Below, piece after piece: positions 1,417 to 35,000 of a DNA stretch of 64,000 nt. Made by a program: the position numbers and the translations under genes. The notes below the pieces were generated by a model. The model saw only the letters and a program-made list of their open reading frames with translations, was not told the origin of the DNA and did not search any database. Origin of the DNA: Botryllus schlosseri (Eukaryota); assembly GCA_051294905.1 (NCBI GenBank), contig CM119386.1, forward strand, positions 8,804,001-8,868,000, read 5' to 3'. Within the stretch, counting starts at the first letter, position 1. Each line of letters starts with the position of its first letter.

Positions 1417-2028
1417 CTGGCTTGGAAGTAGTCTTCTCTGTAACCACCGGGGTGCTCTTCGTAGTCACCACCTCTTTTGTGGTTTCCACAGTGACCGGAG
1501 TAGTCTCAACGATAAGTTTGACGCAGCCACGGAATTCCACTCTCATTGTCACATCGCTATCCGGCGCTGAGCGAATTGGATAAATTCGAACTGCCGACGC
1601 ATGAATATCGTCACGGAGGAAGCGTTCGACGACACTTGTGTCATCGGCGTTGCCGTTGAAGGTCTCCCAGACTTTATCATCGAGCACCGGACCCGTGGGC
1701 GTGTTCAAAATTTTATTTACTTCGATACGAACAAACTCGTTGCTCTCTGTATTGGCATCTACGTACGACACGTTATACTGCGAAGCAAATTGCCCATTAC
1801 CGCCACCTTGAGTGAGGATGCTATGGATAATAACTGGATTCTTGAAAGAAACCTCCAGATACGGGGTAGGGTCGGATGTTTCTGGAGACCAGGCCGGTGG
1901 GATTCCAATATCATTATCATTCGTGATTCTGGCGTACTTCGCTTCTTTACCCTCTTTGCTGGTAGAAGCTGAGATATCTTCATCCGCGATAGCGTGGCTT
2001 GTCATACCCAACGGTTCGTCGCACACTG
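1417..2028 (-). CDS. Exon with FA58C-14 and the start of a further PTS; last exon in the window
   Basis: [23 protein letters not shown]...YAR...AWSP...YLEVSF...LTQG...FNGNADD...VRIYP...MRVEFRGC; donor cca g|gtgcgg. Confidence 0.9.
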
Positions 2029-32000: not shown

Positions 32001-35000
32001 GAAAATGCAAATGGAAATGGAAAACGGAAAGGGTATATTATTGATGACTTGGTCGGAATGCTTAACGAAGAATTATATTTCATCATATGATATTGACTTG
32101 AAAATTTGACTCTGAGCCATATCCATCATACAATGAGAACGTGTCGAGTCAAGGCATTTCAGGGCAGTGACTCGAGTCATTCCAACACTGCCAGGAAGCC
32201 GTTTTCAGTGATGAAATCCAAAAGAATACACCAGTGTGTTTCAGTATATCAGGGACGATGGGCTAAAACCACTACAGGTACTGATAACACAATCTATTGT
32301 TTTGATTTGAATTCTGTTCAGCGTTCAATTCCAGTTTTCCCATTATTACCTTTTGTAACAGTTTCCGTGGTTGCAATCGGTGGAAGAGTCTTCACTGTAG
32401 TTGCCGTGACTTCACCAGATGTCGTCGTAACTGGTACTTCCTCTGTAACCGGGGAGGTTGTTTGGATAACGACAGTGGTAGTTTCGACAGTACTGCTCTT
32501 GGTAGAAGTCGACACTGAAAAGAAGAATGAAAAATGGCTCCAATGCACTGTATCTCAGAAGTTGTCAGCTCCACATCGTTACTACAATGGAGCACACTCA
32601 GTTGACCACACTATACAAGAAAAAGCATTCCCTTAATGAGTGATTAAGTACAACCAGACATTTTCTGGGCAAAACATGTCTATTAAGAAGAATTGAATAA
32701 TGTGGCTCAAGGTTGTAATTGATTAGAATTTATGCATATCAGTTACAAATTATATTATATATATACCATGTTCCACCATGTTAGGGTATGATATTTATCA
32801 TAGTCATGTGTCAAATTGAAGATGTTAAATATACATAGTGTCGGTTTAGGAACCTCACAACATATTAGCAAATATCCTACATCGAATCATAGACTACAGT
32901 GGCGCTTGCTCTTTGAAGGAAGTCATCATGTTATTATGACTCATGATTAAAATGACACCCCTAGTTTTTATCTAGCAGTTAATTATAATGCAAAATCATA
33001 AAAGCGAAGACAGCGTCTTAAATGAAGCTTTGTACCATGCACTGGGAATTCAGCAATAGGAAATTATCAAAACCCTACCTGGTGCTGTTTCAGGGCTTTC
33101 TGTTGTAGTCTTTTCCGGCACCAATGGAGTCGTGGTTTTCACTGTTTCTTCGACAGTTGTTGTTACCAGATGCGTAGTAGTAGGCACTGCATATGCGCAA
33201 CCGTAGATTTCAAAATTCAAACTAGCCCCAAGTTCAGACGTTTCCGCCACGACTATTCTGAGCTCCTCTGCCATAATCGGTGTAGGGAGAGCGACTCTAA
33301 CTGTTTCCGCATCATTGTTGTTTCCTGGAAAAAATATTTGAAAAGAACAGGTTCACTTACACAGTAAATATCAGTGGGATAGAATTATTACAACACATTC
33401 AATAATCGAGACTACTTTGACCAGCTCCGTTACACGGAATCATGCCTAAAGCATTGCATAGTGCGTTGTGCGTCTTGGACAAAGATGGCGAAAGTGGTCG
33501 TCGTTGATGCTTAATTAGAAGTAAATTTCGACTCAAGTACCAGGTGGAATCAAAGTAGCTTATGTTTGCTTTTCAAATTTTGAGATCAACTTTGCAGATA
33601 ATATGGAAATCCCAGTGTTTGTAAATTTTTTTTTTTTTTTGGGCCGTATCTTGGCCATGGTTATATTTGTCAGATTGATTAAATGATGAACATTGCCAAG
33701 ATATGTCCAAAAGAAAATCAATATCTACTCGAGTACTTCAAAATAGTAGTTGTCAAAGATTTTCAGTTTTTCCAAATAAGATTAGAATTAGAAGTAGGCC
33801 TATAGCTAAACTGTTTTTTTTTTCAAATTAGATGAGAACTAGAATTTTATCTACACATTTTTTTGCAAATTAGATCAAAATTAGAATTACCGAATTCGCG
33901 AAAACTTGAAAATTTAATCAGGTTCAGTTCGTATCAAGTTAGAGCTCATGCTCATAAGCACGACGATAGCAAATATCTGTACGACAAGCTTAGCTCGCTT
34001 CACACTATGCAGTTACCCAGCAGCCTTTTCAGGAAATCCGAAAATTAGACTTGAATTAAAGTTAGAGCATAATAACATTTCACAAATTAGATTGCAATTA
34101 GAATTGTAATAGGCGCAAAAAATTTTTCGCAAATTACATTAGAAATAGATTACCAGTATTTTGCTAGTCTCATTAATGAACTAGAATTATCTAGTTGTCC
34201 AAATCTAATAGGAGTACTTATTACTGACAGTCTCTGGTAGTGATCGGATGTAATGAACCCATAATTGCTATTCCGATCCTCACCTTCGAACACAGTTTCA
34301 GTGGCCTCTCCGCCCTCGGAACTGGCGTAACGGTAAGTCTTCCACCCTTTCCCGGCGTTGTACTTGAGAGAAAACTTCGTCACGTACCGTCCGTCCGAAC
34401 CACCCACCAAAGAGAGCTCGGTGACCTCCGTGATTTGGTCGAACTCGACTTCGACGTATTTGTCTTCGTCCTCGTCTACGGGCGACCACGACTGAGAGTC
34501 GGACATTCTCGCGTGTCTCGGCTCGGCGCCGTCCTTGTACGACGACGCGTGAATTTGAGCGTCTTTAATCGTTCCCGAAGTCATCCCGAGCTCGCTCTTG
34601 CAGACTCCTGCGAATAAAACAAGGAGCTAAAATTTTAAATCGCATCGCTTTCAGGCTTTGAATGCCAATACGTAGATATTCGATTTGTGTATAACTAGTA
34701 TGCGATCGTAACAGGTACAGAACTTTAATATACATTTTAATAAAACATGCATAACGTAAATATATTAAAACCTGAAGCTTTTCAAGCTGACACCTTCAGG
34801 GGCAAAAGGAGTTTCAAAAACTTGCATCTAACTAAAATACATACATCCAATTGTGACGTCAACAGGGTTGTAACCGAGTCACAAGGCTCCGATTTACAAG
34901 TCAATCTCGCTTTTATAGTTTTGATTCGAGTCAAGTTGAGTCCTTTTCTATTCACCAAGTCAAGTCTGAGTCCAAGTCCAAGCCAAATTTTATAATCCTT

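Follow-up and report, generated by a model that had tools for sequence, protein, structure and literature searches.

In insect hemolectin, F5_F8_type_C (discoidin) domains stand behind three VWD-C8-TIL units, and the excerpts of Lang et al. (2016; PMC4948705) on which we draw report the same arrangement in mucin-like proteins of Lophotrochozoa and other arthropods, with Pro/Thr/Ser-rich (PTS) regions that are small and, in hemolectin, very small. According to the same excerpts, CysD domains occupy this region in several phyla, and some invertebrate mucin-like proteins are placed nearest to SCO-spondin. Hemocytin builds a sticky network in which hemocytes and microbes are caught (PMC10321396), and a study cited in the excerpt used of PMC4015701 found that hemolymph of flies without the hemolectin discoidin domain did not aggregate bacteria. 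For MUC2, non-covalent dimerisation of CysD is reported in the part of PMC3195396 considered here. We describe a related locus in a 64,000-nucleotide stretch of Botryllus schlosseri (assembly GCA_051294905.1, contig CM119386.1, positions 8,804,001 to 8,868,000 of the forward strand), which we call the window. This is eukaryotic DNA with introns, and the long open frames of its minus strand are Thr-rich and contain discoidin-like sequence. The window probably holds the 5′ part, about two thirds, of one very large gene for a secreted, polymer-forming mucin-type glycoprotein. Our reading, to which we assign a probability of about 0.6, is a mucin that forms polymers and in which stiff, glycosylated spacers present 14 or more discoidin binding modules ("beads") of five old subtypes, from which we infer a multivalent sticky gel.

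Like hemocytin and hemolectin, the locus encodes a large, VWF-like secreted protein in which a three-fold VWD head is followed by discoidin domains. In those proteins (3+2) the discoidin domains stand between the head and two further VWD-C8-TIL units, which here would fall outside the window, and the Saccoglossus relative described below has three VWD only; the window domains lie on the opposite side of a 97/94 split in our domain tree from those of hemocytin. With MUC2 and MUC5 the locus shares a VWD head and a long central region, predicted here to be O-glycosylated, that is interrupted by small disulfide-bonded globular domains. It differs from them in that these domains are discoidin instead of CysD, and in that the spacers are unique sequence instead of a variable number tandem repeat (VNTR); two proteins with both bead types, from the lamprey Lampetra planeri and the amphioxus Branchiostoma belcheri, are intermediate to the MUC2/MUC5 type. 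A three-fold VWD head together with LDLa and discoidin modules is also found in SCO-spondin, but the window has no thrombospondin type-1 repeat (TSR) motif and one weak LDLa only, with Thr-rich mucin spacers in their place.

The discoidin-bead mucin design is already known in related animals. The excerpts of PMC4948705 contain neither 14 discoidin domains alternating regularly with long PTS segments nor a tunicate or deuterostome example, and the window has both. The picture of mucin evolution drawn in these excerpts is unchanged, and it is extended to a deuterostome invertebrate with an unusually long regular array. A literature search combining "F5_F8_type_C" and "mucin" turned up PMC4948705 only, and none of the papers that we found describes a tunicate discoidin-PTS array; the papers on the Ciona gut mucin Ci-GFM1, the Styela endostyle and Botryllus coagulation expressed sequence tags do not describe the window protein.

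Fourteen discoidin domains and their spacers

A jackhmmer scan seeded with one domain, covering all six-frame stop-to-stop segments of the window, gave a count of exactly 14 discoidin (F5/8 type C) domains. All of them are encoded by the minus strand, in the interval 1535-34605. This agrees with an initial annotation of the same DNA, which had described an array of at least 14 and whose end coordinate, 34607, coincides exactly with the base at which the D1 exon begins. Single exons contain 11 of the 14 domains, ten of them paired on five large exons, and the remaining three are split by introns into two (D1) or three (D2 and D7) exons, from which splicing at GT/AG sites guided by a hidden Markov model (HMM) gives complete domains. 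Two profiles were used for family membership, PF00754 (gathering cut-off, 28.2 bits) and an HMM built from foreign PF00754 proteins only. The domains and their exons are the following.

33197..34602, minus strand: D1, 149 aa from Cys to Cys; exons 34284-34607 and 33079-33324; jackhmmer and HMM-guided splicing, with PF00754 on the first exon
29614..30688, minus strand: D2, 152 aa; exons 30515-30735, 30089-30274 and 29542-29709; 107.7 bits with the foreign-only HMM, 57% identical to its paralog D7
24636..26248, minus strand: single exon with D3 (25773-26243), a 145-aa Thr-rich spacer and D4 (24858-25337); PF00754
19386..21131, minus strand: single exon with D5 (20665-21126), a 109-aa spacer, D6 (19891-20337) and a Thr-rich tail; PF00754, AlphaFold2 model of D5
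17187..18195, minus strand: D7, 152 aa; exons 18022-18248, 17549-17734 and 17115-17282; spliced RNA contigs of runs X5, X6 and X16, and HMM-guided model
11552..13143, minus strand: single exon with D8 (12662-13138), a 133-aa spacer and D9 (11789-12262); PF00754, AlphaFold2 model of D9
7333..9022, minus strand: single exon with D10 (8562-9017), a 112-aa spacer, D11 (7779-8225) and a Thr-rich tail; PF00754
4130..6349, minus strand: single exon with D12 (5860-6309), a 230-aa spacer, D13 (4744-5169) and a Thr-rich tail; PF00754 on the cut-out domains
1412..2091, minus strand: exon with D14 (1523-2023, 167 aa) and a Thr-rich tail to a predicted donor; PF00754

The foreign-only HMM scored all 14 domains at 69-120 bits. 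The PF00754 count, which the initial annotation had proposed as a check, came out above the gathering score for all 11 single-exon domains (five open reading frames (ORFs) at 51-100 bits; D12 and D13, when cut out, at 56.1 and 42.3 bits) and for the first exon of D1 (41.6 bits), but the exon pieces of D2 and D7 stayed below it (18 bits or less), and these two reached 108 bits as whole domains with the foreign-only HMM. The whole 729-aa ORF at 4108-6297 gave no Pfam match; because D12 and D13 match PF00754 clearly once they are cut out of it, we attribute this blank to filtering of the Thr-rich sequence.

From Cys to Cys the domains measure 142-167 aa, and a bracketing Cys is present at both ends in all 14. 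The N-terminal motif C-x4-G-[ML], which had been ascribed to every domain, was found in ten, the Gly being absent from D6, D10, D11 and D13, and the ascribed C-terminal GC or SC was found throughout (GC in 13 domains, SC in D12). D10 is the only bead with a third Cys (..VECIGC), located two residues before the closing Cys; judging from the sequence, this Cys could be without a partner in the domain and thus free to form an intermolecular disulfide.

The 13 spacers between the bracketing Cys are 109-336 aa long, with Thr at 32-39%, Thr plus Ser at 42-53% and Pro at 4-11%, and are free of Cys except for one spacer with a single Cys. They are Thr-rich as initially annotated, although the length given there, about 70 to several hundred aa, was a little low at its lower bound. 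The locus thus has the long Pro/Thr/Ser-rich central region of gel-forming mucins. The only tandem repeat among the spacers is short and lies between D12 and D13 (5559-5779), so the mucin region is unique sequence and not a VNTR.

Gene model and transcription

Chaining of exons resulted in a 26-exon model on the minus strand, 35895..1412, with 4,382 codons (4,382 aa), no stop and canonical splice sites. The input to the script was limited to Thr-rich or discoidin-like frames and canonical splice sites, and three manual corrections followed. The first chain contained three doubtful mini-exons (31830-31889, 31336-31391 and 1079-1155) and two over-long domain exons; these were replaced by HMM-guided and homology-guided junctions, and the frame was still open. 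Since the last exon (1412-2091) terminates at a predicted donor site, the gene runs past the window start and 14 discoidin domains is a minimum. The Thr-rich exons of the model, in addition to the domain exons, are listed below.

18767-18934, 16496-16736 and 13906-14022, minus strand: short Thr-rich exons; RNA joints and exon-chaining script
35663-35895, 32350-32514, 29246-29483, 27872-27994 and 23300-23471, minus strand: further predicted Thr-rich exons; exon chaining
9082-9178, 3501-3609, 3297-3441 and 3023-3094, minus strand: further predicted Thr-rich exons; exon chaining

RNA was checked in the interval 13400-19399, to which contigs of the three runs X5, X6 and X16 were aligned. The contigs are spliced on the minus strand with GT..AG introns, indicating that the array region is transcribed and spliced, and they confirm six of the 26 exons, including the three of D7, all of which the exon-chaining script had found unaided. 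The joints in the contigs are 18767-18936 / 18020-18245 / 17547-17732 / 17113-17280 / 16496-16734 / 13906-14022. We infer that three "extra" letters at the joint 18245/18767 correspond to an acceptor 3 nt upstream and two strain differences. One contig of 6,356 nt extends, in mRNA terms, past both ends of the 6-kb stretch, by approximately 4.3 kb upstream and by 0.9 kb downstream, so that one RNA covers several beads.

Head of the gene

Upstream of the array, many small exons encode a Cys-rich head, in which the three N-terminal VWD-C8-TIL units of gel-forming mucins occur in order (43.9-59.6 kb). Its parts are the following.

36654..63280, minus strand: N-terminal head, many small exons; Pfam
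63098-63280 and 62400-62621, minus strand: possible EMI-like exon pair; CCSGY motif only, Pfam-negative
59576-60397, minus strand: three EGF; Pfam
54276-59634, minus strand: VWD1-C8-TIL; Pfam
48582-52899, minus strand: VWD2-C8-TIL-TIL; Pfam
43943-47904, minus strand: VWD3-C8-TIL; Pfam
36654-42125, minus strand: TIL, VWC, TIL, VWC, LDLa and VWC; Pfam, with LDLa at 22.9 bits, just under the cut-off of 24.1

The head is collinear with residues 57-1574 of the Saccoglossus protein XP_006824113.1. The TSR motif W[ST]xWxxC was not found in any frame of the window, and a profile made from 13 CysD domains, taken from amphioxus and lamprey proteins, detected no CysD in its six-frame translation. The discoidin beads lie in the Thr-rich region downstream of the VWD head, and in amphioxus and lamprey both bead types are carried on one string, in accordance with the annotated view that they hold the position of CysD in MUC2 and MUC5. 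A short Ser/Thr-rich stretch (43650-43970) directly follows the TIL after VWD3-C8 and forms a first mini-PTS inside the Cys-rich head, before more TIL and VWC.

Fold and surface of the beads

The structure prediction and fold comparison suggested in the initial annotation were carried out on D5 and D9. Both AlphaFold2 models are very confident, with a predicted local distance difference test (pLDDT) score of 95.2 for D5 and 96.5 for D9, and in Foldseek they gave template modelling (TM) scores of 0.78-0.88 to factor VIII (FVIII) C2, neuropilin b1, lactadherin C2 and DDR2. The top matches were FVIII C2, neuropilin b1 (root mean square deviation of 1.6-1.7 Å for D5), lactadherin C2, factor V (FV) C2, DDR2 and CASPR2. 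A sequence search of the PDB agrees, the nearest solved domains being C1/C2 of FV and FVIII, b1/b2 of neuropilin, lactadherin C2, CASPR2 and DDR2. The domains thus have both marks of discoidin domains, the terminal Cys in 14 of 14 and, in the D5 and D9 models, the β-barrel of FVIII C2 and neuropilin b1. CBM32 appeared neither among the 60 PDB sequence matches nor in the top 50 Foldseek matches of either model, and matches to PF22633 (17.5-22 bits) were below the cut-off of 27.8 bits. The beads are ordinary metazoan discoidin domains by sequence and fold, and not CBM32-like as initially proposed.

All 14 domains are acidic, with isoelectric points of 4.1-4.8 and net charges of −7 to −22. The acidity noted at first holds for every domain; of the two motifs quoted for it, DEDEDK is present in D1, but DDNDIG reads NDNDIG and lies in D14. 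In the HMMER alignment, the Trp-Trp loop and the Leu-bearing loop of FV C2 are insertions relative to the window profile, in which the matching loops are K-x-G-x-E-x-K and Q-G-D-x-x-G, with many D, E, G, S and K residues in the spike loops. D4/D9 and D6/D11 have an insertion with Ile, Leu, Phe, Tyr and Trp, located at the presumed second-spike position of FVIII C2. In the D9 model this insertion is an ordered, confidently modelled β-hairpin (residues 48-57). The initial statement that membrane-binding spikes are absent agrees with the deletion of the FV C2 loops and is supported for most domains, but because of the hydrophobic residues in the enlarged second loop of D4, D9, D6 and D11 it may not hold for every one.

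Relatives and history of the array

An exhaustive profile search gave 6,209 proteins at an E-value of 0.001 or lower, many with several discoidin domains. The top scorers, from Pocillopora, Acropora, Nematostella and a Branchiostoma floridae x B. japonicum hybrid record, have tightly packed domains without Thr/Ser-rich spacers. Proteins with beads on a spacer-rich string were found in other animals. The partial Ciona intestinalis record XP_026696163.1 ("mucin-5AC-like") contains five discoidin beads with Thr/Ser-rich spacers of 78-103 aa; in the tree, these beads pair with subtypes of the window. Antedon XP_071944560.1 has nine beads, mostly with spacers of approximately 71-91 aa. Saccoglossus kowalevskii XP_006824113.1 (7,459 aa) has a three-VWD head and 13 discoidin domains, partly with Thr/Ser-rich spacers, and a Cys-rich C-terminal tail that looks cystine-knot-like by eye; in its second half Pfam lists no knot family, and its VWD number three only. 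The Ciona and Saccoglossus proteins thus resemble the window in their discoidin domains with Thr/Ser-rich spacers, and Saccoglossus also in its collinear head, but their domains are 28-39% identical to the window's, both records are automatic annotation only, and the Saccoglossus array is interrupted by Cys-rich modules.

Both bead types occur on one Thr/Ser-rich string in B. belcheri KAI8516201.1 (P0020; seven discoidin and 11 CysD beads) and in L. planeri XP_078460294.1 (P0136; three VWD units, two CysD and four discoidin beads), and we found no paper that mentions this combination for either protein. The lamprey record represents a gel-forming mucin of a vertebrate that bears discoidin beads. 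A 525-kb eukaryotic contig of a metagenome assembly (L001; ENA ERZ22157276, ctg13034l), with at least eight ORFs matching F5_F8_type_C on one strand within 22 kb, evidently carries another, unannotated relative of the window gene.

In the domain tree, the window beads cluster with those of Ciona, Saccoglossus and Antedon on one side of the 97/94 split, and hemocytin, mollusc, cnidarian, amphioxus, lamprey and neuropilin domains are on the other. Identity between the bead subtypes of the window is 20-35%. D2 to D6 match D7 to D11 one by one, with identities of 57, 53, 64, 42 and 52%, indicating that a five-domain block was duplicated. A related species has exon-sized proteins that match D5-D6 at 75-81% identity (P0001) and D8-D9 at 69-80% (P0060). 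P0060 clusters with D8/D9 and not with D3/D4 with strong support, and therefore the block duplication predates the speciation from this relative, in which the exons are 69-81% identical. The window array is old and diversified, whereas the amphioxus, lamprey and coral arrays are recent expansions within their lineages.

Function of the discoidin beads

On the reading of a multivalent sticky gel, the spacers would be densely O-glycosylated and stiff and would hold the folded beads apart. The VWD head would multimerise the chain, as it does in gel-forming mucins and von Willebrand factor, and a cystine knot at the C terminus, as seen in the Saccoglossus relative and lying outside the window, would do likewise. 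The discoidin beads would serve as modules that bind soluble ligands or surfaces and not as membrane anchors, since the Trp-Trp and Leu loops of FV C2 are deleted and the spike loops contain many D, E, G, S and K residues. Such beads would make the polymer multivalently sticky towards microbes, particles, cells or other matrix glycoconjugates, on the model of insect hemocytin and hemolectin. Loop lengths and indels specific to a subtype are retained in orthologs, and five old subtypes, each with its own conserved loop lengths, suggest more than one ligand.

Several observations weigh against this reading. No ligand, glycan or Ca2+ site is identifiable from the bead sequences. The C-end-rule pocket of neuropilin b1 is not kept in the aligned single-exon domains, which do not have its aromatics and in all of which the third loop, carrying Ser/Thr/Tyr in neuropilin, is 4-5 residues shorter; we take the pocket residues to be Y299, W304, D323, S349, T352 and Y356 of frog NRP2, and these identities match in P0011. 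Spike loops were expected to be hyper-conserved or hyper-variable and are neither; their identity between orthologs (71-80%) is no higher than that of the core (65-84%), and thus they do not show the signature of a strongly constrained binding site. Likewise, the expectation that domains are more conserved than spacers fails, both between orthologs and between the duplicated blocks. The spacers, 45-60% identical between blocks and approximately 81% between orthologs, are as conserved as the domains, and therefore the domains are not the sole constrained part. The analogy with hemocytin spans a great evolutionary distance, its domains lying across the 97/94 split. In addition, the bulk RNA run X23 (2026) has zero reads on the exons of the checked stretch, and expression is therefore tissue- or stage-restricted, and the junction of head and array, the gene's 3′ end and its exons below 11.5 kb rest on prediction.

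The beads may instead resemble CysD in their action, as points of non-covalent self-association, possibly aided by Ca2+, that cross-link the polymer to a gel without foreign ligands. Their location at the CysD position of MUC2/MUC5 in a window without CysD, the mixture of both bead types on one string in amphioxus and lamprey, and the non-covalent CysD dimers reported for MUC2 (in the same part of PMC3195396) favor this, and the uniform acidity could permit Ca2+ bridging. However, the net charge of −7 to −22 opposes pairing unless cations are present, five subtypes diverged to 20-35% identity would be odd for homotypic pairing, and the co-occurrence of CysD in the amphioxus and lamprey proteins argues that the bead types are not simply interchangeable. 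We regard such self-association as possible but doubtful. More improbable is that the beads are passive, folded acidic interruptions that aid folding, export from the endoplasmic reticulum or Ca2+-dependent condensation in granules and have no specific ligand. In favor of this, every domain is acidic and has short polar loops, none of the known binding pockets is conserved and the loops are no more conserved than the core; nevertheless, orthologs have kept the subtype-specific loop insertions, including the ordered β-hairpin of D4/D9, and the characterised discoidin proteins that we found (FV/FVIII, neuropilin, lactadherin, DDR2 and hemolectin) all use these domains as binding modules.

Binding to phosphatidylserine-rich membranes, as by the C domains of FV and FVIII and by lactadherin, would tether the polymer to cell surfaces, and FVIII C2 and lactadherin C2 are indeed among the closest solved structures; D4, D9, D6 and D11 also have hydrophobic residues in an enlarged second spike. 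However, this is very unlikely, as the Trp-Trp spike and Leu loop of FV C2 are represented by deletions filled with polar residues and the acidic net charge would repel anionic membranes. Least probable of all is that the array is not one functional gene but an assembly artefact, a pseudogene or adjacent genes wrongly chained. It is true that RNA was checked for six of the 26 exons and that the junction of head and array and the last exons are predicted. Against this stand a frame open for 4,382 codons over 26 exons with canonical splice sites, the unaided recovery of the RNA-confirmed exons by the exon-chaining script, an RNA contig that spans several domain exons, the presence of 82-95% of sampled words in DNA runs, and predicted proteins of other genomes that hold head and array in one chain.

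The reading of a sticky gel with binding beads can be carried further, if only as an unlikely and tentative extension. In the tunicate/ambulacrarian lineage discoidin domains might have taken over the role of internal beads, with each of the five subtypes recognising a different ligand, and the polymer might be a multi-specific sticky net, for example a mucus net that traps particles in filter feeding or a clot-like defence gel.

The locus is a clean, transcribed example of a mucin whose internal beads are discoidin and not CysD. Alongside the proteins of amphioxus and lamprey in which both types occur, it makes the role of internal mucin beads testable, be it cross-linking, ligand binding or packing, as well as the question whether CysD and discoidin beads are interchangeable. 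With spacers of unique sequence and beads that are small, acidic and confidently modelled, expression of single and tandem domains should be easy.

Repeats in the introns

The intron at 14200-16600 is full of high-copy repeats and shows very high RNA depth, with thousands of X23 reads at 15600-15800. Loose ends of these repeats are tRNA-like in look (..GGTTCGATTCC). An abundant non-canonical joint in this intron, 15795>16399 (AT..TG, approximately 3,800 reads), probably reflects other genomic copies without the 603 bp and not splicing of the mucin gene.

At the window start, the intron that lies downstream of the D14 exon contains a large foldback (positions 1-1011), an inverted repeat of approximately 450 nt arranged like a hairpin around a 112-nt centre. 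Its arms 1-228 and 784-1011 are 95% complementary, and arms 226-450 and 563-787 are 86% complementary; the same peptide is encoded by ORFs on both arms, and the foldback may extend past the window start. Two imperfect hexamer microsatellites, (CAATTA)n/(AATTAC)n with approximately 20 copies, are located at 21396-21533 and 22757-22864 in the intron between the D4 and D5 exons.

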